From contig OZ038378.1 in the NCBI GenBank assembly GCA_964036045.1, positions 22,940,001 through 23,004,000 of the forward strand: 64,000 nt of DNA, given 5' to 3'. The position numbers and the translations under genes were made by a program. Of the stretch, positions 25,150-47,759 are shown piece by piece (within the stretch, counting starts at the first letter, position 1; every line of letters begins with the position of its first letter). The stretch comes from Eutreptiella sp. 'Long Island Sound 2002'. Its lineage: Eukaryota; Protista; Euglenida. The notes below the pieces were generated by a model. The model was not told where the DNA came from. It did not search any database and saw only the letters and a program-made list of their open reading frames with translations.

Positions 25150-26030
25150 AACACAACACAACACAACACAACACAACACAACACAACACAACACAACACA
25201 ACACAACACAACACAACACAACACAACACAACACAACACAACACGGCGCGACACAACGCAACATCAGACCATACTACACCACACCTCATTACACCACACC
25301 ACACCACACCACACCACACCACACCACACCACACCACACCACACCACACCACAACACACCACACCACACCACACCACACCACACCACACCACACCACACC
25401 ACACCACACCACACCACACCACACCACACCACACCACACCACACCACACCACACCACACCACACCACACCACACCACACCACACCACACCACACCACACC
25501 TCTGAGTACTCCCCAGCTCTACCCATGGGCTGGGTGCCGGGTGCGAAGCCCCGGACGACAGGGCCCGGGCACTGCCAATAGGCGGTGTACTAACAGTGTC
25601 GGGTGCGCGCACGTCCCAGTGCCAAGCACCATCCCCAGGGACCCCGCGGCCCCTAGTACCGGCCGCCTCGGCCCTGGGAACGGTCAGCGACCCCCAGTAG
25701 AGGACGGCTGACCTAGCCTCCCCCTCCTCTCCTCCCCTACGCGCCCGCCCACGCACCGGGCCCACACTGGAGCCCAAACATGCGCCCCCCCTCGCGCTCC
25801 TGCCCCAGCCCCCCCCCCCCCCCCCCGCAGCCGCCCCCGCGCACGCCCTAGTGGCCCCTCCCCCCTGCACTGCCTCCTCTCCTCACCCCCTGCTGCCACG
25901 CCCGCCCCAGAAGCCTCCCTAACCCTGCCCCTCTTGCAGGCTGGCAGCGCCCGTGCGGCGCGCCCCCAGGGCCCCGCATCGGCGGCCGGCCGCGTGGGAG
26001 TATCAGCCGACACCGAGGAGGCCCCCATGC
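25150..26030 (-). mobile_element. 3' part of an element ending in a compound (TGTGG)n-linker-(TGTTG)n tail, copy 1
   Basis: Tail at 25150-25500. The adjacent ~300 bp (ctgagtactcc..acccatgggctgggtgccgggtgcgaagcccc..) is homologous to 34739-35040. Confidence 0.7.
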
Positions 26031-26634
26031 AGGGGCTTCAGTGGCGCGACAGGGCCGGCAGGGGTATGATGGGTGTGTGGGTGAGTGTGAGCAGTTGAGA
26101 GAATGCGGGACCCCAAATGGGACGGCCTGCGCCGGGGCCGGTGATTTCCTGTTCTGGTTTTAGTTGTTCTTGTTCTTTCCTCCCTGTTATTTGCGCGACT
26201 GCCTGTAGGGGTGTAAGCCTCATGCAGGAGCCTTCGGGCCTGTTAGCGCCTTCCCTTCGGGTTTTCCCTTCTTTTGTTATAGGCAGAGAGAGACGAGCGG
26301 CACCACAGCGCCTGACAGGCCTGTGGCCCAGACATGCGCGGGGGGCCTCAATTACGACCCCCCGCCCTGCGAGATCTGCCCTATGGAGCCAGCCAGAGAG
26401 CGGCTACCAGAACAGTGCCGGAAGGGCAGCGTGGCCCCGCTGGTGATGGCGGTTCGAGGCCACGCTGCCCTTGTACGCTCAAGGCCCAGAAACCGATGGT
26501 TTGGACAGTGAGAAGGTTTATTGGAATTTCACAGGGAGTGAACGTCAGTTGCCTGTCAAGCTGTTGAAGGAACCGTCCCCGTCCCCGTCCGGCTGGACGC
26601 CCCGGTACCGGTATCCAACACCCTTTGAGGTAAG

Positions 26635-27150
26635 GTATAAGGCCCCCTGGCCACCACCCCGGCGCCAACACCAGAGAGGGCGCCCGGGAGGGGTAACAGC
26701 CCCCGATCCCCCAAAGGCAGCCCCAAAGGTGAGCGCACCACTGGAAGGGGCATGTCTGCGGGGTAACCAATTGCGCTGAGTAACTACCTAATGTAATAAA
26801 TAGTGCCTACCGCCGTAAATAATGCTTAACCGGGTAAATGGCCCTCCCCCGGTGCCAGTTTAGTGCGCAGCCCCCAGAGCCGGACCCGACCGGCCGTACT
26901 GAGGCGAGCCCAGAAATGGGTATGGCAGGCCAGACTTTAAGTGCTGGTAGCCACGCCTCAGTACACTCCGTGGGCTCATAAGGCCCACGGGGGCCCCAAA
27001 TACCGTTACGTTCGGGAGTTAAGCCCCGGCGTTATTTGGGGTTGTTCCGGGTTAAGAGGACTCACGTTGAGTCCCTGATACTGTTACCCCGGGGTTATGA
27101 CCTCCGGTACTGCCTGCTTACTTGCCTGCTGCTGCTAAGAGGTAAGAGGG
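26635..27150 (+). ncRNA. Conserved structured RNA leader, copy A (5' end of LINE-like element)
   Basis: Homologous to 36051-36520. Perfect 11-bp stem 26896-26906/26954-26964, a GAAA tetraloop hairpin at 26908-26921, and hairpins at 26879-26894 and 26728-26739. Compensatory changes relative to copy B. Confidence 0.6.
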
Positions 27151-27164
27151 AATACCCACGGGTC

Positions 27165-29530
27165 TTGAAGGAGGCTCCGAACACCCCCTGGGCAGGACTC
27201 CCCGTCCCCCCCGGGCCGGTGCGCCCGGTTCTCCGAAGATACTGGCCCCCCACTGGCCTTGCAAGAGGCTCCGAACACCCCCTGGGCTGGGCTCCCCGTC
27301 CCCCCCAGGCCGGTGCGCCCGGTTCTCTGAAGAAGATGGCCCCCCATAGGCCTTGCAGGAGGCTCCGAACACCCCCTGGGCTGGACTCCCCGTCCTCCCC
27401 AGGCCGGTGCGCCCGGTTCTCCGAAGATGATGGCCCCCCATTGGCCTGGCAGGAGGCTCCGAACACCCCCTGGGCTGGACTCCCCGTCCGCCCCAGGCCG
27501 GTGCGCCCGGTTCTCCGAAGATGATGGCCCCCCACTGGCCTTGCAGGAGGCTCCGAACACCCCCTGGGCTGGGCTCCCCGTCCCCCCCCGGCCGGTGCGC
27601 GCGGTTCTCCGAAGATACTGGCCCCCCATAGGCCTTGCAGGAGGCTCCGAACACCCCCTAGGCTGGACTCCCCGTCCCCCCCAGGCCGGTGTGCCCGGTT
27701 CTCTGAAGACGATGGCCCCCCGCTGGCCTTGCAGGAGGCTCCGAACACCCCTCTGGGCTGGACACCCCGTCCCCCCCAGGCCGGTGCGCCCGGTTCTCTG
27801 AAGATACTGGCCCCCCATAGGCCTTGCAGGAGGCTCCGAACACCCCCTGGGCTGGACTCCCCGTCCCCCCCAGGCCGGTGCACCCGGTTCTCCAAAGATG
27901 ATGGCCCCCCATTGGCCTGGCAGGAGGCTCCGAACACCCCCTGGGCTGGACTCCCCGTCCCCCCGGCCGGTGCGCCCGGTTCTCTGAAGAAGATGGCCCC
28001 CCAATGGCCTTGCAGGAGGCTCCGAACACCCCCTGGGCTGGGCTCCCCGTCCCCCCCAGGCCGGTGCGCCCGGTTCTCTGAAGATGATGGCCCCCCATAG
28101 GCCTTGCAGGAGGCTCCGAACACCCCCTGGGCTGGGCTCCCCGTCCCCCCCAGGCCGGTGCGCCCGGTTCTCCGAAGATGATGGCCCCCCACTGGCCTTG
28201 CAGGAGGCTCCGAACACCCCCTGGGCTGGGCTCCCCGTCCCCCCCAGGCCGGTGCGCCCGGTTCTCCGAAGATACTGGCCCCCCACTGGCCTTGCAGGAG
28301 GCTCCGAACACCCCCTGGGATGGACTCCCCGTCCCCCCCAGGCCGGTGCGCCCGGTTCTCCGAAGATACTGGCCCCCCACTGGCCTTGCAGGAGGCTCCG
28401 AACACCCCCTGGGCTGGGCTCCCCGTCCCCCCCAGGCCGGTGCGCCCGGTTCTCCGAAGATACTGGCCCCCCATAGGCCTTGCAGGAGGCTCCGAACACC
28501 CCCTGGGCTGGGCTCCCCGTCCCCCCCAGGCCGGTGTGCCCGGTTCTCCGAAGATACTGGCCCCCCACTGGCCTTGCAGGAGGCTCCGAACACCCCCTGG
28601 GCTGGGCTCCCCGTCCCCCCCATGCCGGTGCGCCCGGTTCTCCGAAGATACTGGCCCCCCATAGGCCTTGCAGGAGGCTCCGAACACCCCCTGGGCTGGG
28701 CTCCCCGTCCCCCCCAGGCCGGTGCGCCCGGTTCTCCGAAGATACTGGCCCCCCATAGGCCTTGCAGGAGGCTCCGAACACCCCCTGGGATGGACTCCCC
28801 GTCCCCCCCAGGCCGGTGCGCCCGGTTCTCCGAAGATACTGGCCCCCCACTGGCCTTGCAGGAGGCTCCGAACACCCCCTGGGCTGGGCTCCCCGTCCCC
28901 CCCAGGCCGGTGCGCCCGGTTCTCCGAAGATACTGGCCCCCCATAGGCCTTGCAGGAGGCTCCGAACACCCCCTGGGCTGGGCTCCCCGTCCCCCCCAAG
29001 CCGGTGCGCCCGGTTCTCCGAAGATACTGGCCCCCCACTGGCCTTGCAAGAGGCTCCGAACACCCCCTGGGCAGGACTCCCCGTCCGCCCCAGGCCGGTG
29101 CGCCCGGTTCTCCGAAGATGATGGCCCCCCACTGGCCTTGCAAGAGGCTCCGAACACCCCCTGGGCTGGTTTCCCCGTCCCCCCCAGGCCGGTGCGCCCG
29201 GTTCTCCGAAGATGATGGCCCCCCATAGGCCTTGCAGGAGGCTCTGAACACCCCCTGGGCTGGGCTCCCCGTCCCCCCCAGGCCGGTGCGCCCGGTTCTC
29301 TGAAGATACTGGCCCCCCATAGGCCTTGCAGGAGGCTCCGAACACCCCCTGGGCTGGGCTCCCCGTCCCCCCCAGGCCGGTGCGCCAGGTTCTCCGAAGA
29401 TACTGGCCCCCCGTAGGCCTTGCAGGAGGCTCCGAACACCCCCTGGGCTGGGCTCCCCGTCCCCCCCAGGCCGGTGCGCCCGGTTCTCTGACAACGATGG
29501 CCCCCCATTGGCCTTGCAGGGGGATCCGAG
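27165..29530 (+). repeat. 94-bp tandem repeat array, ~25 copies (LINE 5' UTR monomers)
   Basis: gctccgaacacc recurs at 27174, 27268, 27362 and onward (period 94), with occasional partial units. Confidence 0.95.
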
Positions 29531-30281
29531 CACCCCCTGGGCTGGACTCCCTGTCCCCCCGAGGCCGGTCTTTGACGAATGATGGCTCCCCGCGGGCCCT
29601 GCAGGGTGCCACTCCACCCCCCTCGGTTGGGCCTCCTCTCTCCCTCCAGCCATGTGTACCCGGTAGTAGGAGAGGAGCGCCCCCCCCCCTAAGGCGCACC
29701 CCCCGGGCCGCAGTGCCCAAGGGTGAGAAGGTGGGGCCCCCGAGAGCCCTGACGGTGGTTCCAGCGCCCCCGAGGGTAGAAGGCGCCCCAACTAAAGCCG
29801 CCCCTTGCCCCCCCCCGGGCCCTACCCCCCCCCCAAAAGGGAGCGGGCGCCGCCCCCGCATAGCGCACGCAGCCCCTAACAGGCCCCCGGGCGGCACGGG
29901 CAACCAAAGGGCAAGGGCTAGGCGCGGAAATACCCTGACGGCAAACGAAACAAACACACCGGTGGGCATACCGCCGTAGCCGAGGGGGGCGGATGCGCCG
30001 GGCTTTACCCGGAGGCACCCCTGAACCTTGAGGAGGTCCACGGGGGCCGACGGTTGAGCGGTTCGGTACAGGACCACAGGGGCGACCTACGTGCAGCGCG
30101 GTGCCAGCTAGATGCTAGGGTACGGGCCCGTAAGGCCGGCCGCCGAAGGCCACCAACGCGCGAGCGAGAGCAGGTGCCGGCGCCTCAGCACTGGGCGACC
30201 CGGAGGAAGGGATGCGCAGTGCCCATGCATGGGCTTCCGGCCGCAACCCCTTGCTCTCGCTCTGCAGCCCAGTGACACAAC

Positions 30282-33200
30282 ATGTTCCCGTCGACGCCAA
30301 CAACCCCCTACGTGCAGCGACCTCCTATCCCCGGGGGCCTGCCTGCACCACACCCCGCGGGGTCCCCGGCGTATACCGCCCCCCCCCTCCCCCACTATAC
30401 CCACGCCCCCTACACGCCCCACCAGCCGCTCATAGAGGTCCACTCCCAGCCGACGTACCCCGCCTACTACCTGCGGGAGCCGCGATATGGGCTGCCCCCG
30501 ACCCCCCCGCCACCGTCGCCGCTCCCGGCTGTGCCGCCCCCGGACCACCGCGACCTGGAGTTGGCCTACCTGCGGGGCCACGTGGCGGGCCTGGACCGCC
30601 GCACCGAGAATCCCGCGCCCCCTCAGGAGGCGGCGCGGGGGGCGCCCCCGGCGCCACAGGGCCCTGCCCCCAACGCGGTCGGCGAGGCAACGCCGGCACT
30701 GCTGGTAGCACCGGTGCAGGAGGCGGTGCCCCGGGTGGACCGTCGTCCCCCGGCGCCTACAGAGGCGCCACGCCGGCCCCAGGGGACAACCGACCGCCGG
30801 TCCCGCTCCCCCCGATGGGACCTACGCGATGATCACCGAGGCCACAGCCATACAAGCCCCGGCAGGGATGGCCGCATGGCGTACCGCCGGCCCTACCGCT
30901 CCCCGGAGCGGTACTACGGGCGCCGGTCCGAGGAGCGTTCCTCCGGGCACCGAGCCCCCACAACTAGGGGCAGAGACCGCACCCCCGACCGCCGGGATGA
31001 CCGCTCCCGTCGAGACCCGCCCGGCTCAGCCCCCGGGGCGGGCCGAGAGCGGCGGGGCCCCGATGACCGGCGCCGGCGCCGCTCCCCCAGCCCGGATACC
31101 GCTAGGCGCCTGCGGTATGACGCGCCAGACACGGGGCGCCAACCGCAGTGGGAGCCCCGTACAGCTCCCAACGCCCAACCCCCGCATATCCCGAAGGACA
31201 AACCCCCGCGCAAGCGTCAACGCCACAGTAAGGAAGGCCGGCAGCCTGCGGCGCAGTCGCCCGCGGGCATCCCGCACAGGTATCCGGCACACGCTCTAGC
31301 GGGGACCCAAACGACGCCGGGCCTCCTGGCCCCTCGTGCACAGCAGGCACGGCCACCGCAAGACGGCGTCCCCCACACGCCCCAAAAACACCGAGCCTGT
31401 GTCACACAGACCACCCCAGGCCTCCGGGGCCCAGGCTACGCCCCCCCGAGTGGGGCAACGCAAGCTCCTCAGCAGCCCCGCACCGCGGACCCACCGACCG
31501 TCCTGCACATCCGGCGCCTCCCCGCAGGGTGGTCCCGCCGTCACCTGGCGGACCGTTTCATGTGGCTGGACGGGGCGGAGGGGGTGGCGGAGGCTTTTCA
31601 TGGAGGAGAAAAACACGGGTACCTGACCTTCCGCGCCCACGCACAGGCGCTGGCGGCGTGTGCGGTAGTCAGCGTTGCCCTGGGTACAGTAGCGCCCCCG
31701 CCCGGCCGCCTGCCGGCGGCCGTCCACTGTGTGAGCTACAGTGTCGTTCGAGACCTGACCGTGCACACGCGGCAGCACGCCCAGGGCGAGGGGCGGCAGG
31801 ACACACCGTCCGCCGGGGCGGCCCCCCCGCGCGTGGACCGCCCCTCCCTCACGGAGGAAGACGTCCGGCGCCTCATAGCCGATGCCGTGAGCAGGCCGCA
31901 GCAGGTGGTGCATCCACAGCCGCGGGAGCCCGCCCGGGCACCGGCAGCCGACGCGATCGGTGACGCCGGCCACCCCCTGCCCCGAGCCCCCCCCCCCCCC
32001 CCCCCGACGCGCCCGGGGGCTCAACAGGCGCCCCTCTCCCGGGGAAAAGACCCATCGCTGCCCGACGGCGAGAATCAAGGAACCACCGCAGCTCGGATGA
32101 GCCTGCCTGCGCGGCCGCGAGCCACCGCCGGTGGCCAACCCAGCCGGCTCAGCTGGCGTCTCCTGGCAGTTGCCGGGTCGCCTAGCGACCCCGGCCAGCC
32201 GGCTGCCGGGCGTGCCGGCGCAGGCCCCCCCCTGCCCGGCCCCCCGGATTTGGCGACCGAGAACATCTCCCAGGACCTCTTGGACACAGATAGCCGAGCG
32301 GAGGGCCACCAGCGCCCCCTCACCAGTGCCCCTGTGGCCCCTGTGGCCCGCCCCCCGGCGCCTGTTGGCCAGCCCCTGGCCACCCCGACCCACGACGGTG
32401 CTGAGGCCTCAGCTCCCCCGACAGGGGACCACCCCCCAGAGGGGCCAACCCTAGATTGGTGTGCAATCTGTCGCTTCTGGCGCCCCAGCCCGTGCGACCA
32501 ATGCCCCCCACGGCAGGCCCCCCTGGAGGCAGATGAGGCTGCTGCGGAGCCAGCCCCTGAAGGAGAACGGATGCCTGGGCCCGATGAGGCCTCGCCCGCT
32601 CTCGACACTCACACTCCGCGTGAGGCGGAGGACCCTCCGCCCCCCCCATCGATGTGGATGCGTCCCAGGGCACGGCCACCCAACTGGCTGGCCTCCTGGA
32701 TGATGAGGCGGGCGCCCTTAGCCAACTGGAGCCCCTGCCGCCGGCGGTCGTGTCAGACGACCACCCTGAGCCACCGGCTGCCGGCCACGCCGACAGCCCG
32801 CCGGGCGGGGTGGGCCCGCACGACTCCCGCCTAGCGGCACTCATTGCCGATACCGCCCTGGAGGAGGCGAACCCCTGCAGGGCCATGGACGTACCTGTCT
32901 TCCTAGACAGCGAACGCCTGTCGGCGGTGGGACGCCGCATACGGGCGGCGGGCCAGGACACCACCCCCGTCCCCGGCCCCCATTCCCCGGAGGGAGACGG
33001 CCTCCCTCCCCTCCTGGCCCAGTATGCCAAGAGCACCCGCGAGCTGCTCCAGCTCGTGGGCTTTACCCTGGGGGTCCCCTCCTTCTCCCTCTCCAGCTGA
33101 GAGGGAGATGCCATCCCGGCCCCTCACCCGCCGGGACTTGGGATCACGGTTTATTACGTGATCGAGGGGAGGGTGCAGCTCCGCCTCCCCGCCCCCGAGG

Positions 33201-34157: not shown

Positions 34158-35040
34158 AACACAACACAACACAACACAACACAACACAACACAACACAAC
34201 ACAACACAACACAACACAACACAACACAACACAACACAACACAACACAACACAACACGGCGCGACACAACGCAACATCAGACCATACTACACCACACCTC
34301 ATTACACCACACCACACCACACCACACCACACCACACCACACCACACCACACCACACCACACCACACCACACCACACCACACCACGCCACACCACACCAC
34401 ACCACACCACACCACACCACACCACACCACACCACACCACACCACACCACAACACACCACACCACACCACACCACACCACACCACACCACAACACACCAC
34501 ACCACACCACACCACACCACACCACACCACACCACACCACACCACACCACACCACACACCACACCACACCACACCACACCACACCACACCACACCACACC
34601 ACACCATACCACACCACACCACACCACACCACACCACACCACACCACACCACACCACCAAATTAGACCACACGAAATCCGCTGTACTGCACCGTGCCATG
34701 CCATGCCGTGCCATGCCACAGCACGGCACACCGCACCCTGAGTACTCCCAAGCTCTACCCATGGGCTGGGTGCCGGGTGCGAAGCCCCGCACGACAGGGC
34801 CTGTGTGCCACCCTACGGGTGGTGTACTAACGGTGTCGCGTGTAAGCACTCCCCAGTGCCAAACATCAGCCCTGTGGATCCCGCGGCCCCCTACAACCAA
34901 GGCACCTAGGCATCGGGAACGGCCAGCGTCCCCTAGCGAGGACGGCTGGCACAGCCTCCCCGTCCTCTCCCCCACAGACGCCCACCGGGCCCCCCGCCGC
35001 ACCCCAGCACGTGCCCCCCCCCCCCCCCCCCGCCTGCGCT
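34158..35040 (-). mobile_element. 3' part of the (TGTGG)n/(TGTTG)n-tailed element, copy 2
   Basis: Tail at 34158-34657 has the same internal linker as copy 1. 34739-35040 is homologous to 25501-25810. Confidence 0.7.
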
Positions 35041-36050
35041 AGTGCGGATCATGGGCGGGGAACACGTTTTCTTATCGCAAGAGCCCACAGTATTTGGCAC
35101 TTGCAGCGAGGGCAATAGTCTGTGTAGCCCTGTCCGAGGGGAGGGAGGTGCACATAGTCGAGGGTGACGAGTCCGGCGCTTTTGACATGCCAATCGGAGA
35201 GGACGTCGCCCGATGTGGGGCCCACTGGCCCACACAGTGTGTGTACGGGGTGTGGCCGGCCGATTTTTACGGCCGGCAGAAGGTCCGGTTATGGACGGTG
35301 TAGGGATTGGCACCGCCGATCGTGCCACAGTTAGGGTTATCGCAAGGGTGCAAGTTGGCAGCCACAGCGTACCTGGAGTACGGTAAATACAGAAACAAGG
35401 GTCTGCAGTACCTGGTGATTGCTGGTGGGTACGGGGAGTTAGTTTGAGTGAGGTGGTGTTTAGTGATGATAGGAGGTGGTTCGGCAGAACAGCAGAGGAA
35501 GCCACGTGTTTGGCCACAGTGGCCCATGTGCTGTCGCAAGACGCGTGCGCCCCAAGCAACCAGGCCAAAATGCAGTACACTTGTCTGCAGCTGGCACCGT
35601 CCGGTATCATACAGCGTGCGCGCCACGTCATATACGTTCACGGCATGCCTGTGGAGTCTGCACTAACGTCCCAGAGGTGGTAGGCACAACTTTGGAGCCC
35701 CACACAGCACCACCACACTTACTGGGCCGCGTGGTCAAAAGTGCACGTCGTCTGCAATATTTCATCACCAAGTACCAGCCAAACTTTTTACTGGCTGTGC
35801 GTTCGGTCATAGAGTACCTGGTGTCGCGTGTTGATTACGTGGCTAAAGGGTCGTGGCTGTTACAGCCAGAATGCGCGGAAGTCGGCATAGTTGTCACAGA
35901 TGGGATAGAGTGCATGGAGTTCAGTTTCGGTGTGGTGGCCACCGCCGTGTCATCGTGTGCATGGGAGTGGCTGGCGAAACTCCTCGCCATGTTGAGGCTG
36001 CAGCACTACAGAGATGAGTTGTACATGTTCTGTGATAATGTGTCTGTGCA

Positions 36051-36520
36051 GGTATAAGGCCCCCCACCCCCCGCCCCGGCGCCCACACCAGAGAGGGCGT
36101 TCGGAAGGGGTAACAACCCCCAATCCCCCAACGGCAGCCCCCATGGTGAGCGCACCACCGGAAGAGGCATGTCTGCGGGGTAAAAGGTTGAGCTAAGTAA
36201 TAACTTCTAAACATACCGCCCTACCGCTGTAACTAAAGGGCCAAGTCCTTTTATGTGCGCCCCCCCCATAGCCGGACTTACCCGGCCGCGATGAGGCAGC
36301 CCTCACGGTATGGCTGTTCTTAATTGCCGGCCACGCCTCGTCGCATCTCTGCGGGCTTAAACCGCCCATGGGGCCCCTGCTTCATGTACTTGTTCTGCAG
36401 GTAAGCCCCGGCAGAACTCAGGGCTTCCCGTTAAAGGGACTCGCACCCGCGACACGTTGGACCAGGTGCGGAGGACCTGCTACTGCTACCCCAGGGTTAT
36501 GAGCCCCGGGACTACTTGCT
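36051..36520 (+). ncRNA. Conserved structured RNA leader, copy B
   Basis: Begins ggtataaggccccc, as copy A does. Stem 36288-36297/36335-36344; hairpins at 36271-36286 and 36145-36156. Confidence 0.6.
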
Positions 36521-36894
36521 TACTGCGCCTGCTTGCAACCTTCCAAGGGTAGGCACGGGGGGAAACCGCATCCGCCACAGCGGCGGCGAGGAGTCGGTAG
36601 CATCCCCGGACCCGTGTACCCAGCCCAAAACTCTACAGGTGGGAAACCCCGACCAAGGTAGCAAGGCTAGATGGGGCAAGAACACCTCCCCAGGCGCCCA
36701 ACGGGACGAAAGCGCGCTCCCAAGGGACCGGCCCTGCCCCCCGCTTTCTACGACCCCCGACACCACGTTGCGGCTGGGCTAGGCCCACGCACCACAGCAA
36801 CGGTGCCCCTCCGCCGGGTGTGTTGGCGTCAACCCCAACCGCCTGCGATCTTCAAGTGCATAACCCCTCCACCCAGTTTCTTTTCCACCCCTCC

Positions 36895-37070: not shown

Positions 37071-40000
37071 CCTCTAGTGCGCTCATGCACAAGGGCCATG
37101 AGTTCAATGAGGCCCGTGTGCGCTCACGCACAAAGGCCGTGAATTTAAGGAGACCCCAGTACACTCATGCGCGGAAGCCATGATTTTAATGAGGCCCCAG
37201 TGCGCTTGTGCAAAAGGGCTAGGATTTCATGACACCATAGTGCGCTAGTGCACAGGGGCCATGTGCTCAATGAGGGCCCAGTGCGCTCATACGCAAAGGC
37301 TAGGAGTTCGAAGAGGTCCCAGTGCATTCACTCAAAGGGGCCAAGGGTTCAATGAGGCCCTAGTGCACTAACGCACAGGGGGCAAGAGTTCAATGAGACT
37401 CCAGTGTGCTCGTGCACAAGGGCGAGGAGATCAATGAGGCCCTAGTGCGCTGATGCATGGGGGCAAGGATTTCAATGAGACACAAGTGCACTAATAGATT
37501 GGGGCCATGAGTCCAATGAGGACCAAGCGCGCTCATGCACAAGGGCCAGAGTTTCAATCAGGCCCTCGTGCGCTTGTTCACAGGGGCCACGAGTTCCCAA
37601 AGGCCCGGGTGCGCTCACGCACAGGGGCCAGTATTTCAATGAGACCCTAGTGCGCTCACGCACAGGGTCCCTGAGTTCAATGAGGCCCCAGTGCGGTCAT
37701 GCACGGGAGACGCGATTTCCATGAGGCCCCAATGCGCTATTGCACAGGGGCCATTAGTTCAATGAGGCCACAATGCGCTCATGCACACGGGCCATGAGTT
37801 CAATGAGGCCCCTGTGCGCTCACACACAAGGGCCATGAGTTCCACAAGACCCCACTGCGCTCCCGCACCAGGGCCAAGATTTCATGAGGCCCGAGTGCGC
37901 TCACACAGAGGGGCCAAGTATTCAATCAGGCCTCAGTGCGCTCGTGCACGAAGGTCGTGAATTCAAGGAGACCCGTGTACGCTTATGGGCGGGTGCCATG
38001 ATTTCAATGAGGCCCTAGTGCACTCATGCACAGCGGCCAGAGTTTCAATGAGGCCGCATCGTACCCATGCACATGGGCCACGATTTAAAGGAGGCCACAA
38101 TGTGTTCATGCACGGCCATGAGTTCAATGAGGCCCCCAAGCGCTCATGCGCAGGGGCCAAGAGTTCAATGAGACCCCCATGTACGCATGCACAGGGGTCG
38201 GGATTTCAATCAGGCCCTAGTGCGCTCATGCATAGGGGCTGAGAGCTCCCAAAGGCCCGAGTGGGCTCATGCACAGGGGCCAAGATTTCAATGAGGCCCC
38301 AGTGCGCTCACCCATAGGGGCCACGAGTTCAATGAGGCACCAATAAGCTCATGTGCAGGGGCCAGGGGTTCCAAGAAGCCCTAGTGCGCTCCCACAGAGG
38401 GGCCATGTTTTCAATGAGGCCCTAGTGCGCTCGTGCGCAAGGGCCACGCGTTTAATGAGGCGCTGGTGCGCTCATGCACAGACAACAATATTTCAATAAG
38501 GCCCTAGTGCACTCATGCACAGAGGCCGGGATTTCAAAGAGACCGCAGTGCGCTCATGCAGGGGGGCCATGAGTTCAATGCTGCCCCGGTGTGCTCACGC
38601 ACAGGGGCCAGGCTTTCGATGACACACCAGTGCACTCATGCATAGGGGCCATGAGTTCAATGAGGCCGAAGAGCGCTCGTGCACATGGGCTAGGTTTTCA
38701 GCTAGGCCGAAGTGCACTCACGCACGGGGGCCATGAGTTCCATGATGCCCCAGTGCACCGGTCCACAGGGGCAAGGATTTCAATGAGGCCCTAGCGTGCT
38801 GATGCACAAGGGCCGTGATTCCAATGAGGCCACAAAGTGCGCAGGCACAGGGGCTATGATTTCAATGAGGCCCCAATGCGCTCATGCAGAAGGGCCAAGA
38901 TTTCAATGAGATCCCAATGCCCTCATGCACAAGGGCGAGCAGTTCAATAAGGCCCTAGTGCGCTCATGCACAGGGGCCAAGATGTCAATGACACACCACT
39001 GCACTGATGCATACGGGCCATGAGTCCAATGAGGCCCCAACGTGCTCATGCAGAAGGGGGAATGAGTTCAATAAGGCACCATGAGAACGAGTGCGCTCAT
39101 GCACAGGGGCCAAGATTTCAATGAGGCCTCACTCCGCTGGTGCATAGGGGCCGAGATTTCAATGAGGCCCCTGTGCGCTCGCACACAGGGGCCACGATTC
39201 AAATGAGACCCCACTGTACTCACGCAAAGGGGCCAGGATTTCAAAGAGGCCCCAATGCGCTCATGCACAGGGCTTAGGATTTCAGTGAGGCCCCAGTGTG
39301 CTCATGCAAAAGAGCCAGAATTTCCATGAGGCCCCAATGAGCTCACATAGGGGGGCCATGATTTCAATGAGGCCCCAATGCGCTCATGCACGGGGGCCAT
39401 GAGTTCAATCAGGCGCTGGTGAGCTCACACATAGGCACTAGGAAGTAAATCAAGCCCTAGGGCGCTCATGAACAAGGGCCAAGACTTCAAAGAGACCTCA
39501 ATGGGCTCATGCAGAGGGGCCATGAGTTCAATGAGGCCCCAGTGCACTCCAGCTCAAGGGCCGGTATTGCAATGAGGACCCAGTGCGCTCATGCACAGGG
39601 GCCAATATTTCAATGAGACACCGGTGTACTGATGCATGGGGGCCATGACTTCAATGTGGCCCCCATGCGCTCATGCACGCGGGTCTGGTTATGCAGCTAG
39701 GCCGTAGTGCGCTCACGCAAAGCGGCCATGAATTCAATGGGTCCCAGTGGGCTCGTGCACAGGGGCCAAGTTTCCAATGAGGCGCCAGTGTGTTGATGCA
39801 CAAGGGCCGTGACTTCAATGAGGCCACAATGCGCTCATGCACAAGGGCAAGCAGTTCAATAAGGCCCTAGTGCGCGCATGAACAAGGGCCAGAATTGTAA
39901 TGAGACTAAAGTGCGCTCATGCACAAGAGCCATGAGTTGAATGAGGACCCAGTGCGCTCATGCACAGGGACCACAATTTAACTGAGGCCCCAGTGCACTC

Positions 40001-40567
40001 ATGCACAACAGCCATGAGTTCAATGAGGCCCCATTGCGCTCATACACAGGCGCCAATATTGCAGCAAGGACCCTATGCACTCATGCACAGGGGCCATGAG
40101 TTCAATGAGGCCCCAGTGCGCTCATGCATAGGGGCAAGGATTTCAATGAGGCCGAAAAATGCTCATGCACAGGGGCAAGGATTTCCATGAGACACCGGTG
40201 CACTAATGCATAGGGGCCATGAATCCAATGAGGCCCCAGTGCGCATGCACGGGGAGAATGAGTTCAATGAGGCCGCAATACGCTCATGCACAGGAGCCAG
40301 GACTTCATTAAGGCCACAGCACGCTCGTGCACAGGGGCCGGAAGATTGATACGGCCCTAGTGCACTCGTGCCCAGGGGCGCGGAGTTCCCAAAGACACGA
40401 GTGTCCTCATGCACAGGGCCAGGGGTTCAATGAGACCACGGTGCGCTCATGCACAGGGGCCAGGATTCTAATGAGACCTCAGTGTGCTCATGCACAGGGG
40501 CCATGATTTCAATGAGGGCCCAATGCACTCACGCTCGGGGGCGAGGTTTTGAGTGAGACCCCAGTGC
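37070..40567. repeat. 41-bp satellite array, ~85 diverged copies
   Basis: Consensus caatgaggccccagtgcgctcatgcacaggggccatgagtt. Confidence 0.95.
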
Positions 40568-41152
40568 GGGGCACACACTTGCACGGCGGTCAGAGGGGCT
40601 GGAAGAGGCAGGCAGTCCTCCAGGCAATGCACCTCGTCGGGTGCGGGGAGCCTTGGACCCACACGTACGGGAGGGCCTGGGCTCCACCGTCCGGTTGGTC
40701 AAGAGGGTGAGGGTCGCTGTAATGTTGGCGCGGTGCAGCCTCCACCTCCGCCGGCAAAAATGGCCAAGGATGTCGGACGTGACATCCAAACGGCCGTCCG
40801 GGTTGCGGTCATGCCTGGCAATGCCGCGCAAGCGGCCTGCCAAATCCGCGGCAGCGGTGGCGAGGAGGGCGGGCGCATCCGGCCGCGCGCACGGCCTTTG
40901 GAACACCATCTGAGCCTGGGCACCCATCCAGAGGCGGCGGATAGGCCACTTAGGCGGGCGGCTTGCCGCGACCCACCTTTGGTGAAAGTGGCCTTTTGGT
41001 TGGCGGCGAGCCGCCGCCGCCTTGGAGCACTTGTGGCGGCGGCCACCCCGGTGACGCCGCTTGGCCTTGCGGCCACCTCTGCGTCGTGGCATAGCACGTG
41101 AAAGGGTCTCCCGCGGTACCCCCGGGCTCATTGGAACCCCCCCTGTCCACAC

Positions 41153-41640
41153 TCAACGGTTGCGCAGACAAATGATGCCACAAATCTTACGGGCATCCAG
41201 ATGGCACAGCACACATTGCAAGATTTCCGAAGCCCCGTCCTGGGGCCTAGACTGCAATCCCTCTTGCTCAGAGTTTCCCCTGGACATTGGGTCGCCGGGC
41301 TGGAGGTCCGACGGCACTGACAAGAGCCTCACCACCAAACTAGAAGTCCACGAAACCCTGGCAAACAATCGCAGAATTGCCTGTTGGTGCCGCAAGGGGC
41401 TGCAGGCCCTCAGGGACAGCACCTGGGCTAGTGCCACCTCGCTATCACCGCATACTGTGATAGAAGACATGCCCAGGCGCACCGCCAGCCGTACCACCCA
41501 CGCCACCACATGCAGCTGTGTCGTTTGCTAACTAGCGTACTGTCAGAGGGGCGGGGAGAAGGACCTGACGCCAAACAAGGGAACAAGAGCACCAACAGGC
41601 CAACGCCCCGCGTCCGGGGCCCCATCCACACATGCAAGAA
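41153..41640 (-). pseudogene. RNase H domain of YR retroelement
   Basis: Motifs CVDGAPDAGRW, degenerate S*QTTQL, ITVCGDSEVAL and VPSDLQPGDPMSR; two in-frame stops. Confidence 0.75.
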
Positions 41641-41699
41641 AGTGTCCCGCCAAAACCGAAGAGGCGGTCAAGCATGGCTCGGAACCAAAGCTGAAAGTC

Positions 41700-42975
41700 T
41701 AAAGGTGGGGCCAAGCTTTGCGGGAGGGGGCTGCCCAAGGCTTGGCCACTAACACTGCAAGAGTAGCAAGACCGTCCAACAGCTTAATAGGCAGGCCCTG
41801 GCTCGGTTGCCGCTCCCCGTCCACTGTTTGTCCCCATCGGCGCCAACACCTCGCCCCGGCCCCGAAAGGGCATCCAAGTCCACACGGACGCACATGCTGC
41901 TTTAGCAGGCCAAAGTAGCTGCGGAGGTGCCGCCCACCCCCGTCCCCAAGGGCCAACCTCATCAAGCCCACCCACAGCTGAAGCAGTGCTTGGGTATGGC
42001 ACGAAACCGTCCGTGTCGCCAAGTTCCGGGCCTTCCCCAGGAAGGAGACCAGCTGCACAGGGTCCAAAACGCTCTTAGGGTTTATCAAGAACCCGGCCTC
42101 GACTAGTGCACGCACTGCCGCACGACCAGCCTCCCGGGGGTACCCCTCCTCGCAGTAGCAAAAAATCATCCAGATAGTGCACCAGCAGGACCCCGAGAGG
42201 GAGCACGCCCTACAGCACGTGTGCGAGGGCCGTCTGCAAAATACGGACTTCATTTCCAGCCAAAAGGGAAGGGGCACTACAACTCAAGAGCCACAAGACC
42301 CAAGCCCCGCTGAAAGCGAAAAATTCTCCAAGCCCCGGGCAAGAGGCGGAAGGACCATAAGGCGTTCTTAAGGTCGATGTGCACCGCAAAAAGGGGCAGC
42401 CCCGGGGGATCCTCGACAGAGCGCGTGCCAAGTCCTCCCATGAATCCAGCCTAAAAGTCGGCGGCACCGGCCCGTCCCGTTCATTGCGCGTGACACAGCT
42501 GAGGATAAGGGAAACCTTTTCAAAGGACTTAGGGATCACGAAAGAGTAATGTGTTGGGGGGAAGGGGGAGGGCGGCACTTGGTAGACCCCGCCCCTTGTA
42601 GAGCGGAGACCAGGCACTCCACGTGCTCAGAAACCCAAGAGGAAGACCCCCTCACCACCCTGTCCGCATCCTTCCAACTTTCCTCCGCGTTGAAATCCCT
42701 CACACTATTCCGGAAAACCTCTGGGACCACGGATTTCCACACGTCACGGGGGAGGGGGAAATCGCCAAACGGCCCGAGACCTTTATCGAGGATGGTGTTG
42801 TCCACGTCCCCCACCGCCCGGGGAATGGGGGAAGTAGACACTGTAGGCAGGAGCGCCAAGTGTCCGGGGACAGCCCCCTTAGCGCCTCCAAGAACTTAGG
42901 CAGGGCATGCAGCAGGCGGTAGTCCTCCGCCGTGGCAAAAACGCGGTCCAGCCACACGCCGGTTCGTTTAGCCAC
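41700..42975 (-). pseudogene. Reverse transcriptase domain of YR retroelement
   Basis: FVIPKSFEKVSLILSCV, PPTFRLDSWE, HIDLKNA (~42361-42382) and HYLDDFLLL (~42153-42179); frameshifted. Confidence 0.85.
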
Positions 42976-43849
42976 CAGTCACAGGCTACACCTCAGACTG
43001 GCCGCAATCCAGTTGAAATGGGGGGTAAGGGCCCGCATGAATTCAAGATAAAGAGGAGCCATCTTGCGCACTCTGTTCCCCTTGTCCGGGCCGTACATCC
43101 TGGGCTCGAGTCTCCGCCACAAGCCCCCCCGCCTCCAAGTCTTGGTCGCGAGGCACCGTGCAATAGCCAAGAAGGCAGTCTACGGCGGGCTTTGAGCCAT
43201 TTGCGGCCCCCGGGCTCGGACCCCGCCGGTGCAACGCCTTTTGGAAGGTGGGAGCCCTTCTGCTGCGCTCCCACGACGGCGGCCGGCCAGACCCCGTGAG
43301 GCGGCGGGGGGGGGGGGGGGGGCGCATGGCGGCGAATATCCACTTCCACCGCAAGGGCTAGGCGGGCCCTTGTATACACGGAAGGCACGGCCCACCATTC
43401 CGGGTCTGCGATCTTGTCCATGTGGTGCCGCGGACTGGCCCACGGGCTGTTGCCGACATCCATCCAGGTCGTTCTCGCCCTGCGAATCGGGAGGGCCGGC
43501 CGTCGGATTCAGTTGGACTGGCGCCTGCTGGTACCATTGTGAAGCTGCCATCAGGTTCACCGCCAGATTCTTCAGTGTCGACGTCGGTGTCCACATCGGA
43601 GTCGACCAAAGCGGGGCCCTCGGCGCTTCCCGTTTGGCGAACTTCCCCACCAGCGCCCCCCACACCGGCATCCGGGGCGCCCAGCTGCACAGCAACCTCA
43701 CCAGCCATAGTGCCGCGCGCTAGCTCAAATGCCGGATAGGGTAGCAACAGCGGTTCCGCCGCCTCAGAGAATGCATGCATTGGCACAGCCGTCCAGACAG
43801 GGCACTCCAGCGACTCCTGGGCATCGGAAGCTGTGTCTGGCTAGCCGTC

Positions 43850-45100
43850 TTTGAACTCGTGTGACTGGCTTGCTCCTGGAACGACACCCACGGCCGCGGA
43901 TCTTGACCGGGGCCTCCTTCTGTGCGCAATATGTGGGGCTCTGCTTTTCCTCCTGGTCCGTGAGTCCACCACTCGGGCCAACTCTAAATACATGGCCAGG
44001 CCGCAGATTGAGGCGAGACCCACTCGCGAAGGCTCCGGGCTGGGGCCTGTACCTCGCTCCCACGCGGGGACGATGGTGGGGGCGATGACCGCCGGGTCAG
44101 TCCGGCGGGTGGCATACTGCAGAGCAACCGCAGTAGTCTGCCACCGCCCCCACCATTTGAAGTAGACCAGGTCAGGTTTGCGGGCCGAGCACGCCCCCAT
44201 GCCATTCTAGGAGAGGGCATGCATGTCGGACTTCTTGCCAATTCTCAACACAAAGCCATGAGCCCAGTCTCGTACTTGGTCAGCTTACCTGGACAAGTGT
44301 CTGGTGGTGTACCCCTGGTCCCCAGTTTTCCTGTTCCAAAACTGAATAGCCCCCGGAAGTGCGACGTCCGCCACCTCCCCTCCACATAGAAAGCATATCC
44401 AGGCAAGGGTTGCAAGAGCCCCGAGGGGGGGCCCGTACGTAGAATTGGACGCATTCTCCACGAGGATGACCAGCCCTTCCGAGGGAAGGTATGGCTGGGG
44501 TCAAGCTGAGGCCGCCCCCGCAGGGATCCTTTTGTGAAGAGTGGTGACGACCGGCGGGATCAATTGCAGATTCTCAACAGCACAGATGGCCGACGCGAAG
44601 ACTCGGACAGAGGACGCGGTCGGCCCTATGCGGGCGCACTCCGTGAGGATGCCTGCCAGCGCCTCCGCGATAGTTGACGGGCCCGTTCGCGCCGCATAGG
44701 ACGCCAGCGCGAAAAGCCACGAACCGTATTGGGCCCTGGTACGGGGACGCCACGACTACATGGCGCTTTCCTCAAGTGTATTGGGTTCATCGACGTTGGA
44801 CGCTTGAACCCAGCGGGTTGGCAAGGTTCGCGAAGAGGGCGGCTGTGTCGCCTATACCCCACCCCCAACCCCAGGATCAGGTCGGGGGGGGGGGGCTATG
44901 ATCAGGACTAGTGGGGGCACTGGAAGTGCCAGCAGCGCCCCCCCCCCCCCCGGGAGGCCACGCTGGGTGCACCCGTGGCAGTCCCCACTCGGCGGGGAGT
45001 CGACGGGGATCCATTCCCCTTGCCGCGTCTGCCACTGCAGCATGCCCCCGACCACCCTAAACGCTTCTCCACACGAAGCTATCTCCAAAGGCCTCTCTTG
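43850..45100 (-). pseudogene. Tyrosine recombinase domain of YR retroelement
   Basis: Core-binding-like SSVRVFASAICAVENLQLIP; degenerate H-x-x-R box (HALS*); C-terminal FKWWGRWQTTAVALQYA with the putative catalytic Tyr. Confidence 0.75.
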
Positions 45101-45173
45101 CCTCCTTCAGCGTACCATGCTATTGGTCCGTCTGCCTGGCATTGCCGGCTAAACCCGCGTACCTCCTGGCGTA

Positions 45174-45685
45174 CAATCGGGGGAAAATTTTAGCACGGGA
45201 AAATTTCGCCGGGGAAAATTTCGCTGGGGAAAAATTCCGCCACAATCGTTAAAAGTGATGGGGAAAATTGCGCCACCCTTTTCCATGGTGAAGGGCAAGG
45301 CCTAAGGTCGGCTCTCCTTACTGAGGGGGACACCACTTGAGGAAAAGTTGTGATGAGGGTCTAGTTTGCTCAGGTCCTGGGGGGGGGGGGCATGCACATG
45401 CAAACATGCAAACATGAAGACATGAAAAAACACACAACAGCCAAGCAGACAACACAGAAACAAACCAGACCATCCATCCACATGACGTATTAAATTCTGC
45501 ACCCCCCTCCCCCGATCATACCCCCCCCCCGCAAAGGGTACAAATTTTGAACTTGATGTCCAAAAAAAAGTATGGGAAAAATTGCACCACAATCGTTAAA
45601 AATGGTGGGGAAAATTGCGCCAGAATTGGGCGTACGAAATTTTTCCAAACAGGTTTCTTCCCGTACTAAATTTTTCCCCTGCCCG
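45174..45685. mobile_element. MITE with imperfect TIRs and TA target duplication, inserted in the gag-like ORF
   Basis: TA at 45172-73 and 45686-87. TIR cores are GGGGAAAATTTTAGCACGGGAA and GGGGAAAAATTTAGTACGGGAA. Removing the element and one TA restores a continuous frame (..S*SAYARRYAG..). Confidence 0.75.
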
Positions 45686-45687
45686 TA

Positions 45688-46071
45688 TGCCGACTAGGAC
45701 TGATTGATGCAGTCCCAGGTGCGCCACGCCAGCTGCTCCCCCGGGTCCATCATGTCGTTGGCCACATGGCCTTTGAACTCAACCGGCCGTGGAACCTCGC
45801 CAACTTCGCCATCCCTCAGCTTGACATAGGCTTTCATATTGGAGAAGATAAGTCTCATCCACTGGGTCAGCTAGGGTCGCTCGAGGGCCATGTTCAACTC
45901 AAGCACGGACAAGGGAGGGAGGGTCGGACATTCCTTTACTGACGCCCTGGCAAGCTGTTCTCGTAGTTGCTAAATTTCTCTGGCTAGTTCTGCGAGCCTC
46001 TCCACGGCTGAGGCGTGAGGCTCATGGGAGTCGGAGGGTGGCTGCATTTCATGCCCGTCCATGGCACTCAT
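45688..46071 (-). pseudogene. Gag-like coiled-coil ORF remnant of the YR element
   Basis: MSAMDGHEMQPP..SAVERLAELAREI*QLREQLARA.., with TAG stops that look CAG-derived. Confidence 0.5.
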
Positions 46072-46144
46072 TATGAAAAATTGACCAAAAAATTGCCTAA
46101 GTAGGGAGTGGCAAACAAAAGTTGAGGCGAGGTTCAACTAGTGA

Positions 46145-46812
46145 TTTCAATGAGGCCCCAGTGCGCTCATGCACAGGGGCCAACAGTTCAATAAGGCCCT
46201 AGTAAGCTCATGCACAGGGGCTAGGATTTCAATGAGACCCCCGTGCGCACATGCACGGCAACGAGTGGTTCTATGAGGCCCCAGTGTGCTCGTGCACAAG
46301 GGCCATGAGTTCAATGAGGCCCCGGTGCCCTCACACACATGTGCCAGGAGATGAATAAGGCCCAAGTGCGCTCATGCACGGTGGCCATGAGTTCAAAGAG
46401 GCCCCAGTGAGCTGGTGCACAAGGGCCAGAAGTATCTAGAGGCCCTAGTGCGCTCATACACAGAGGCCAGAATTTCAATGAGACCCTAGTGCGCTCACGC
46501 ACAGGAGCCGGGAGTTCCCTGAGGCCCTAGTGCGCTCGCACAAAGGGACCAAAATTTCAATGTGACCGCAGTGCGCTCAGGCATAGGGGCCACACATTCA
46601 GTAAGACCCCGGTGTGCACATGCACAACGGCCCCGGTGAGCTCATGCACAAGGGGCAGGATTTCATTGAGGCCCTAGTGCGCTCATGCACAAGGATTTTA
46701 ATGACGCCCTAATGTGATCATGCACTAACACGACAAGGTCTAACAAGCCCCAATGAGCTCTCGCATAACGGCGATGATTTCAATGAGGCCCCCATGCGCT
46801 CGTGCACACGGG
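46145..46812. repeat. 41-bp satellite array 2 (same orientation as 37-40.5 kb)
   Basis: caatgaggccccagtgcgctcatgcacaggggcc units. Confidence 0.92.
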
Positions 46813-46965
46813 CCACTAGTTCAGCGTTCAGCCTGGATTCTCCTCCCTTATTCCCTCCCTGGAACAATTATTCTCCACCTGGCGGCAGGGGGTGCCATAA
46901 GGACGCTCACTCTTTTTTTTTTACTATGGCATGCACTCTCTGATGGTGGAGGTACACCAGAATCT

Positions 46966-47034
46966 GAGGTACCTCAATTGGTAGTTGTACTACACGCTCA
47001 TCGTGAGGTCCCAGGTTCAATTCCCTGTTCGTGC
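46966..47034 (+). pseudogene. tRNA-derived (SINE-like) remnant
   Basis: A-box-like TACCTCAATTGGT and B-box GGTTCAATTCC at tRNA spacing, but no acceptor stem. Confidence 0.4.
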
Positions 47035-47759
47035 AATATTTTTGGCTTCGCTTTTTTGGTCTTTTATGTGTCTGCATGTTACCCCCAGTTTGTGTTTGGC
47101 TTCTTTCTTTTTTGGTTTGGTTTATGTCTGCATGTTACCCCCAGCGGTTACCCTCCAACCGCCATCGGTTACCCGCCAACCGCCATCGGTTACCCACCAA
47201 CCGCCATCGTAGGGCGTATTGGACACTCTGAGTTTTTTTTTTTGTTAGGGCACCCCCTGCCTGGTGGTAAAGGTGCTCGTGCATGTAGACAACTGAAAGG
47301 CCCCAGCCCCAATCCATCATCTTCCTCAAAATGTAATTTGGTTGCTGACGTGATGTGTGTTTGGATGGTGTGGTGCTGTGTGCTGTGCCGAAGGCGCTGT
47401 TACCAGAAGGCAAAGGCTACCCACGAGTACAAGTAAACGGGAGGGCTGTGTGTGTTGCGCGCGCGCTGTGTGCGAGTTTATTTACCACGGCGGAAAGCGG
47501 GGGTATGCACTGGTGCCCGCCGCTCTGCCCTGTGGTGGCGGCTGCGGGTCTTGTGCGGCTGGGGGGGGGCACGTGTGCCGGCCCCGGTGGCGCGCGGGGG
47601 GGGGGGGCTCCAGCCCCCGCCGCGGAGCGTTGGTGGCGCTTCCTGCGCAGCGTGTCCTCCCCCCCCCCCCCCCCCGCTTCAGCCCCACGCGCCATCGCGC
47701 TCCGGGCCGGATTTCCTCTGCCGCTCTCCTGCTTTGGCAGGGCATCCTATAGCGGCAAG

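Follow-up and report, generated by a model that had tools for sequence, protein, structure and literature searches.

What kind of signal is carried by the long conserved block that stands ahead of the open reading frames (ORFs) of an abundant long interspersed nuclear element (LINE) in the euglenid Eutreptiella sp. 'Long Island Sound 2002'? The question is raised by a 64,000-nt stretch of this genome (referred to as the window; assembly GCA_964036045.1, contig OZ038378.1, positions 22,940,001 to 23,004,000 of the forward strand), which harbors two copies of the block, A (26635-27150, + strand) and B (36050-36530, + strand). An earlier note on the window had proposed that both copies represent a novel structured RNA, possibly a ribozyme, at the 5' end of a retroelement. 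According to our analysis the block is very probably a real, selected and structured RNA of the LINE 5' untranslated region (5'UTR); it matches no known RNA family and is a candidate for a new family in Rfam. We give even chances to the wider reading that it is a two-part control region which acts in cis from the 5'UTR of a diverse and abundant APE-type LINE family with (ACACC)n tails. That the folded part specifically is a putative protein-binding scaffold is proposed only tentatively and is the more doubtful claim.

Copies, extent and fold of the block

Copies A and B can be aligned from AGGTATAAGG onward with 79% mean column identity; B belongs to a diverged family and its homology begins exactly at this point. 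A covariance model of the 171-nt core of the fold scored 162.4 bits on copy A and 126.8 bits on copy B (36267-36424) and found the folded domain nowhere on the minus strand of the 64-kb window. Beyond the two copies compared in the earlier note, homologs were gathered from the entire 2.28-Gb assembly, which contains well over 1000 copies of the block and dozens of diverged families; all block sequences are drawn from this one genome. With the block of copy A as query 1457 first-look candidates were obtained, the best of them 97-98% identical, and queries with B and two diverged copies yielded dozens of singleton copies of 69-82% identity. Most block copies are alike to 97-98%, and the dozens of old families to 69-82%. 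The core model found at least 150 matches, all of full length and with scores of 125-200 bits. Among the matches listed, more than 40 had an identical score (167.9 bits over 168 nt), which points to a second very young and abundant family distinct from the family of copy A (family A).

The block comprises about 640 nt and is common to many diverged families of one LINE. The region conserved among these families extends from about 60-85 nt upstream of GGTATAAGG (GCCC..GGGCACCCGTCCGGCTGGAC...) to near CTGCTTGC(A/T), with family-specific sequence on either side. The start originally given for the block (26635 in A) agrees with the point where homology begins in copy B, but in nearly all other families the block starts this distance of about 60-85 nt further upstream. 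The additional segment (26575-26634 in A) is kept across the diverged families, unlike the sequence further upstream, and shows no compensatory changes. The fold is mainly confined to the 3' half of the block (Part II), and the 5' half is conserved plain sequence (Part I). The features of the block are listed below, for single helices together with the number of same-branch double changes which keep the pairing in a tree-aware count (see the following section).

26575-26634, + strand: upstream part of the block, a GTCC-N4-GGAC palindrome followed by GGTA..GGTAT..CATCCTTTGAG; B is without it
26635-26874, + strand: Part I, conserved as primary sequence, many nearly invariant columns
26661-26667 / 26678-26684: H15, GGCGCC hairpin; 3 double changes
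near 26839-26857: H13, GGGCCT/AGGTCC hairpin; 4 double changes
26875-27110, + strand: Part II, folded RNA domain of about 235 nt in A with about ten helices
26879-26883 GCCGG / 26890-26894 CCGGC, + strand: H1, hairpin
26896-26905 GTACTGAGGC / 26955-26964 GCCTCAGTAC, + strand: H2, closes the three-way junction; 3 double changes plus 3 restorations
26909-26912 / 26917-26920, + strand: H3, CCCA-GAAA-TGGG with GAAA loop; 2 double changes
26923-26926 TGGC / 26950-26953 GCCA, + strand: H4a, branch of the junction; 1 double change, in one pair with the states GC 16, AU 12 and GU 5
26929-26933 / 26944-26948, + strand: H4b, inner stem
26966-26975 / 26983-26992, + strand: H5, bulged hairpin which holds GGGC/GCCC
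26994-27005 / 27030-27041, + strand: H6, 12 bp, encloses H7; 11 double changes
27013-27016 / 27025-27028, + strand: H7, hairpin inside H6; 2 double changes
27058-27064 / 27068-27074, + strand: H8, hairpin; 2 double changes
27089-27094 / 27102-27107, + strand: H9, hairpin; 2 double changes
27111-27150, + strand: tail of the block, pyrimidine-rich (CTGC/CTTAC), running into tandem monomers; the families diverge after CTGCTTGC(A/T)
36050-36530, + strand: copy B of a diverged family

All stems named in the earlier note are present in A, and the statement that A and B share one fold in spite of their divergence was borne out. This includes the three-way junction made up of H2, H3 with its GAAA tetraloop in A and H4a (TGGC..GCCA), and it includes H2 itself, which in copy B is formed by GCGATGAGGC with GCCTCGTCGC and differs from A by three double changes and one U-G pair, as had been described. 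The strands of the junction are short (GAG or AG, UA, and C), its GUAUG strand is almost invariant and CUGA is conserved only in lineage A. The hairpins GCCGG/CCGGC and GGGC/GCCC are present and conserved, and the upstream elements GGTG-AGCG-CACC and GCAG/CTGC are conserved as well, but neither pair of elements displays compensatory changes. A pairing between the loop TCATAA and the downstream TTATGA, which had also been suggested, applies to the A lineage only and could not be upheld for the block in general, as most families contain TTAAACT in that loop.

Part I is characterized by the nearly invariant GGTATAAGG, which is both TATA-like and 5'-splice-site-like, by CCACCACC, by a GGCGCC/GGCGCC hairpin and by GGTG-AGCG-CACC. 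The stretch GGTAAGGTATAAGG, with the same resemblance to a TATA motif and to a 5' splice site, is the most invariant part of the block. Double changes within Part I were found only in the hairpins at 26661/26678 and 26839-26857, and the 5' part (about 300 nt) has no excess folding energy. In most families the motif TTAAAGGG is duplicated; it has diverged in A. At columns 331-347 of our alignment A3, where TTAAAGGG TTAAAGGG is expected, one locus (L045) reads CCAAAGGG CCAAAGGG, so that both copies changed together, which is a single case. The tetranucleotide UUAA occurs 5.5 times per copy compared with 2.0 times in dinucleotide shuffles. It is located at fixed columns, three of which are unpaired loops or junctions of Part II, namely the loop of H5, the loop of H7 and the junction between H6 and H8.

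Covariation, strand and comparison with known RNA families

For the analysis of covariation 38 diverged copies were aligned (alignment A3, 67% mean column identity) and a model with 19 helices was built by hand. Slid partners, shuffles and tree-aware counts served as controls, the latter with a FastTree tree and pair states assigned by parsimony. In the model 85.7% of the cells were paired compared with 34-51% for slid partners, 94 cells were changed on both sides compared with 26-50, and none of 500 shuffles matched the model (percentage of paired cells, changed cells and covariation score). The 171-nt core, represented by 31 copies, gave a similar picture with 86.9% of the cells paired (controls 31-49%) and 61 cells changed on both sides (controls 15-27). 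Since paired cells are not independent events, changes were additionally counted on the tree, which revealed 30 same-branch double changes that keep the pairing compared with 3-9 in the slid controls. Together with the shuffles this confirms the covariation that the earlier note had claimed for the fold. On internal branches 18 broken pairs were restored and 49 broken (ratio 0.37), on terminal branches 9 were restored and 231 broken (ratio 0.04). Such a difference would arise if active lineages were under selection and dead copies then decayed neutrally. The active lineages have kept the fold of Part II via compensatory and G-U-mediated substitutions, while decay in the dead copies is random.

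In an unbiased scan of all possible helices H6 was a clear outlier with 11 events, compared with mostly 0-2 events for 271 local candidates. When only strict Watson-Crick events on internal branches were counted, H6 reached five and 1164 candidates at most three. A long-range pairing of columns 105-112 with 522-530 was rejected: it showed three strict events, most of its pairing was of the G-U type, and lineage A lacks the 5' arm through a deletion. Two simpler measures were discarded as well. A plain G-test with average product correction was swamped by subfamily-diagnostic columns and of no use, and a naive helix scan counting pair types was too noisy in the G+C-rich block.

Folding energies agree with the division into two parts. 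The minimum free energy fold of the 3' half of A contains the helices of the model, with z = -5.86 on the + strand and z = -3.55 on the - strand, and the 5' half of A has z = -0.33. When 31 diverged cores were folded singly, the mean z was -2.96, 20 of the 31 lay below -2, and H6 and H2 were mostly recovered in 23 and 22 of them, respectively. Among pair states shared by at least three copies G-U outnumbered A-C (168 vs 80), among singleton states it did not (25 vs 38), and the stem around the TTATGA loop passes through the series GGG/CCC, GGG/CUC and GAG/CUC. The difference in z, the excess of shared G-U pairs and this series place the RNA on the + strand, which is the strand of ORF1. The earlier assignment of the RNA to the + strand upstream of ORF1 is consequently supported by G-U counts, by z values and by the position of ORF1 downstream on the same strand.

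The window was searched with all 4227 models of Rfam 15, and no match at the gathering score was obtained over its 64 kb. With E values of up to 10 on 25500-27250, only chance-level microRNA-like matches upstream of the block appeared (E 0.2-8). In this respect the novelty suggested in the earlier note is supported.

The host LINE and the position of the block

The features of the window which surround the two copies of the block are as follows.

25151-25500, + strand: (ACACC)n microsatellite that bounds element A at the 5' side; the LINE's tail or target repeat
27164-29569, + strand: 94-nt tandem monomers in 25.6 copies, lying behind the block and ahead of ORF1 in element A
30282-32834, + strand: ORF1 of element A, 850 amino acids (aa), Pro/Arg-rich, with an RRM-like stretch recognized by eye
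34159-34657, + strand: second (ACACC)n tract; end of the homology between copy A and fuller copies, and start of the 5' region that precedes B
37076-40568, + strand: 41-nt tandem monomers, about 85 copies, behind copy B

Fuller copies of the element (loci L064-L068, L089 and L090) display the order (ACACC)n, leader, block, tandem monomers, ORF1 of about 800 aa, a second ORF, ORF2, 3'UTR and again (ACACC)n. LINE copies end in (ACACC)n, and such tracts are found on both sides in the window, in L064/L089 and in L066/L090. Over 783 aa the ORF1 of element A shares 78% identity with its counterpart in another copy; it has no Pfam match. In element A homology to the fuller copies ends at 34159, ahead of the second ORF and ORF2; another LINE copy has lost its reverse transcriptase (RT) by an internal deletion of 2.5 kb. 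By eye, the translation of ORF2 reveals APE motifs (N-V-R-G, E, T-D-T-N, S-R-I-D and S-D-H-H-V-P), a C-terminal CCHC knuckle (C-x2-C...H-x4-C) and, for the RT, motif A (DLAKFFD), motif B (GTPQG) and motif C (WVDD). In the ESM Atlas the RT piece falls among RVT_1 clusters (score 0.96). Judged by these motifs, the host is an APE/RT/CCHC LINE with an (ACACC)n tail and not the degraded retroelement downstream of copy B. LINE proteins whose motifs were not recognized by Pfam or the PDB sequence search are L064:764-3247:-, L066:3-1550:- and window 30282-32834, which suggests a very divergent, compositionally biased LINE lineage.

Arrays of monomers of about 91-98 nt stand behind the block in seven of 13 other loci examined (among them L035, L039, L042, L047, L048 and L049), and among near-identical copies their length varies from less than 1 kb to more than 9 kb.

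The earlier note had placed the block at the 5' end of the retroelement. This is the case in L045, where the block directly follows the three-unit (ACACC) tail of an upstream copy and marks the 5' terminus, and the block of L069 and L070 has the same start, with 20 nt of flank each; probably the block forms the 5' tip in more families than that of L045. It is not the case in family A, whose more than 1000 copies (97-98% identity) carry a leader of 0.8-1.1 kb upstream of the block. In A and several further families repeat and block are separated by a leader of 0.6-1.1 kb. About one third of the A-type copies stand right behind a LINE 3' end with the (ACACC)n repeat, which implies that elements stack head-to-tail in the tail repeat. 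That the leader might represent the 3' terminus of the element, with an internal microsatellite, was considered but not adopted. Upstream of the repeat a LINE 3' end is missing in about two thirds of the A-type copies; a shared segment of about 260-316 nt, however, tells the other way.

This segment lies right behind (ACACC)n at 25500-25736 and 34657-34973 of the window and also behind the 3' tail in L064/L089, with about 80% identity. In two independent loci it ends at about the same point and the sequences differ beyond, which leaves the exact 5' boundary of family A open. The segment might correspond to a small partner element or be terminal.

Directly ahead of copy B the window contains an open frame of 193 codons (35476-36057), which extends up to ...GTGCAG immediately before GTATAAGG. 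By eye it shows an RNase H-like D..E..D pattern; Pfam gave no match even at E values of up to 10.

Possible functions of the block

The block lies on the sense strand of the 5'UTR of a non-LTR retrotransposon (LTR, long terminal repeat) and is kept across families more than its flanks, with compensatory changes, as is characteristic of a cis-acting element. LINEs need internal promoters, and in the reading we prefer Part I would act at the level of DNA or linear RNA, for example as such a promoter. Part II would display five or six conserved unpaired UUAA motifs as a scaffold, which may be bound by a protein, most simply by ORF1p or ORF2p of the element itself. Such binding would mark the full-length, non-trans-spliced RNA for ribonucleoprotein assembly, export or stability.

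Several observations weigh against this reading or parts of it. Part of the helices had been picked by eye from the sequences on which they were tested, so that the slid-partner control is biased. For H1, H5, H10, H11, H12, H14, H17 and H18, which lack compensatory changes in the tree-aware count, conservation and thermodynamics are the only basis; the same holds for the inner stem H4b, and H16, a tentative UUAA hairpin, likewise shows no compensatory change. Only H6 individually exceeds the background of the helix scan, as H2, H13 and H15 show 3-4 events and chance helices 2-4. The helices other than H6 lie within the upper tail of the background and rely on combined counts, thermodynamics, adjacency and nesting. 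RNAalifold, applied to the alignments with 38 and 31 rows, misses H2 and H6 and recovers H4a and parts of H5 and H7 only, probably as a consequence of decayed copies that break many cells; this failure led us to build the model by hand and to control it by slid partners, shuffles and tree-aware counts. No homologs outside this genome were matched in two metagenome pattern scans. With respect to function, 3 kb of repeats separate the block from ORF1 in A, and the promoter role suggested for the 5' half is derived solely from conservation without structure. Finally, Pfam (26 ORFs in all; E up to 0.1 for the LINE proteins) and a PDB sequence search (two ORFs, E up to 1) were blank, so that the domain calls rest on motifs read by eye and on the Atlas neighborhood.

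Other roles have to be compared with the proposed control region. A contribution to translation would be plausible for a structured + strand domain upstream of ORF1, which might recruit ribosomes in the manner of an internal ribosome entry site (IRES) on RNA without spliced leader. In Euglenozoa mRNAs are normally trans-spliced. The Pr77 transcripts of the trypanosomatid element L1Tc are unspliced (PMC3383444). However, the start of ORF1 in A is found 3.1 kb downstream beyond 25 GC-rich monomers, monomer arrays likewise intervene between the block and any ORF in the seven loci mentioned above, and the block has no similarity to any Rfam IRES at E values of up to 10; we regard this role as rather unlikely. 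Unlikely, too, is a function in splicing, with the block as intron or outron within the LINE leader and the fold serving to join its ends or to regulate (trans-)splicing. It is attractive as the start GAG|GTAAG|GTATAAGG resembles a 5' splice site in the most invariant stretch of the block, the 3' end is rich in CTGC/CTTAC and terminates with GCAG, GCAA or TTAG, and in B an open frame leads up to ...GTGCAG|GTATAAGG. The 3' AG, however, has no fixed position, and no copy lacking exactly the block was seen, though no systematic search was made. Intron_gpI, Intron_gpII and group-II-D1D4 gave no match at E values of up to 10 (25500-27250), and splicing leaves nine kept internal helices unexplained. 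The features of Part I would also suit an element acting purely at the DNA level, be it a promoter or enhancer whose factor sites are palindromic or a site for recombination or for a hairpin, with the RNA fold being incidental: the 5' half is conserved without folding signal and includes a TATA-like motif and the GTCC-N4-GGAC palindrome, and a promoter of the required internal type is known from Pr77 (PMC4748587). As an explanation of the entire block this is quite unlikely, for the 3' half tolerates G-U in a strand-asymmetric manner, double changes keep the pairing across stems 30-60 nt apart, and the + strand folds better than the - strand.

The ribozyme considered in the earlier note, of a new class or cryptic HDV-like (HDV, hepatitis delta virus), would cut read-through transcripts of stacked LINEs to unit length. 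Head-to-tail stacking is common, the block directly follows the upstream tail repeat in L045 (with the same start in L069 and L070), and it comprises a compact three-way junction with the almost invariant GUAUG strand. Moreover, in trypanosomatid LINEs of the same phylum (L1Tc/ingi) promoter and HDV-like ribozyme are combined in the first 77 nt (PMC3383444, PMC3185411, PMC4035085), and R2 carries a 5' HDV-like ribozyme (PMC3774820). Nevertheless, the highly similar copies of family A keep their leader upstream of the block, which argues that their RNA templates were not cut at the block. No HDV, CPEB3, drz or other ribozyme family of Rfam was matched on 25500-27250 at the gathering score or with E values of up to 10, including hammerhead, twister, twister-sister, pistol, hatchet, hairpin and VS, and a hammerhead core would require longer junction strands. 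HDV-like ribozymes form a nested double pseudoknot (P1, P1.1, P2, P3 and P4) that begins at the cleavage site and has a catalytic C in J4/2. When 30 copies were screened over their first 300 alignment columns with a descriptor of this topology, no match appeared, which is modest evidence, as the descriptor was home-made and strict and allowed no mismatches. The first 200 nt exhibit almost no covariation. The failure to fit the fold to an HDV, hammerhead, twister or pistol consensus, reported before, was in this way reproduced, and the ribozyme idea itself was not supported; we consider it very unlikely. The same very low probability is assigned to the idea that the folded 3' half represents a new RNA class, catalytic or autonomous in another way, e.g., a large self-cleaving domain trimming read-through of LINE arrays. 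If the self-cleaving version were true, the block would be a much-expanded euglenid counterpart of Pr77, and the combination of promoter and ribozyme would be ancestral in euglenozoan LINEs. The multi-helix domain, with a GNRA loop in one lineage, might finally derive from a cellular non-coding RNA captured in the LINE leader (SRP, RNase P/MRP, small nuclear RNA-like or similar). Rfam gave no match on either strand at E values of up to 10, although divergent euglenid RNAs could escape it, ARAGORN found no tRNA, and all scored copies occur in the same LINE context as far as examined; such an origin is extremely improbable.

For the favored control region, four known systems offer parallels. Like Pr77/L1TcRz, the block is a signature common to many LINE families of one euglenozoan lineage, is located at or near the 5' end of APE-type LINEs, which in both cases also have non-autonomous derivatives, and plausibly has a dual nature with a promoter part at the DNA level and a folded part at the RNA level. 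Pr77, however, comprises 77 nt, is always at +1 and forms an HDV-like double pseudoknot with proven cleavage, whereas the block measures about 640 nt and stands behind a leader in the main family, and no HDV-like topology was found in it. The signature of Pr77 begins with CCCTGGCTCAGCCGG and includes a CGTG downstream promoter element at +25 to +28 (PMC4748587). The block begins with GCCC..CCCTG(C/T)GGGCACCCGTCC in most families; by eye only CCCTG is shared, and there is no CGTG at a matching distance.

Reportedly, work of the Eickbush laboratory described a protein-binding, pseudoknotted 5' region of R2 RNA, and this would be the nearest parallel to the proposed scaffold. R2 resembles the element described here as a LINE inserting site-specifically into tandem repeats, with a large conserved cis-acting folded RNA near its 5' end and covariation across diverged lineages. 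It differs in its target, which is 28S rDNA and not a microsatellite or tail repeat, and in its single ORF with a restriction-like endonuclease instead of ORF1 and an APE-type ORF2; as far as Rfam and the descriptor tell, the folds are unrelated. The 5'UTR of mouse L1 consists of tandem promoter monomers of about 200 bp upstream of a non-monomeric unique tether. Both 5'UTRs combine a unique segment with a variable array of short tandem monomers ahead of ORF1, but in the euglenid LINE the unique block lies upstream of its monomers of 41-98 nt and contains a covarying RNA fold. The constitutive transport element of Mason-Pfizer monkey virus and the RNA transport element of mouse intracisternal A particles bind NXF1 or RBM15 and are situated near the 3' end of LTR-type elements. 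They are multi-stem, internally repetitive RNA scaffolds by which unspliced RNA bypasses the coupling of export to splicing, and the putative UUAA loops would fit such a function; they differ from the block in their 3' position in LTR-type elements and have no similarity to it in sequence or fold.

Large RNA domains supported by covariation are rare in LINE 5'UTRs, and those of R2 and L1Tc control the making, the trimming and the binding of the element RNA by its own protein. The block described here is common to many families of a repeat that apparently ranks among the most abundant in a protist genome of 2.3 Gb. As spliced-leader trans-splicing matures most mRNAs in such organisms, the expression, export and recognition of retrotransposon RNA pose a question, for which the 12-bp covarying stem, the three-way junction and the repeated UUAA loops represent a defined and mutable target. 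If the block were only a promoter mark with a stabilizing fold, it would be a useful but ordinary addition to LINE biology.

The sequences downstream of copy B contain further repeats. The degraded retroelement at 40568-46136, on whose ORF pieces Pfam detected nothing, looks like an insertion into the 41-nt array of element B, which resumes in the same orientation after 46146 (46146-46592). An ORF at 46753-47436 was considered as a relative of ORF1 and rejected, being unrelated to the ORF1 of A. It is followed by a 47-nt tandem array (47813-48256) and then by an inverted copy of the 41-nt array (48265-49107).

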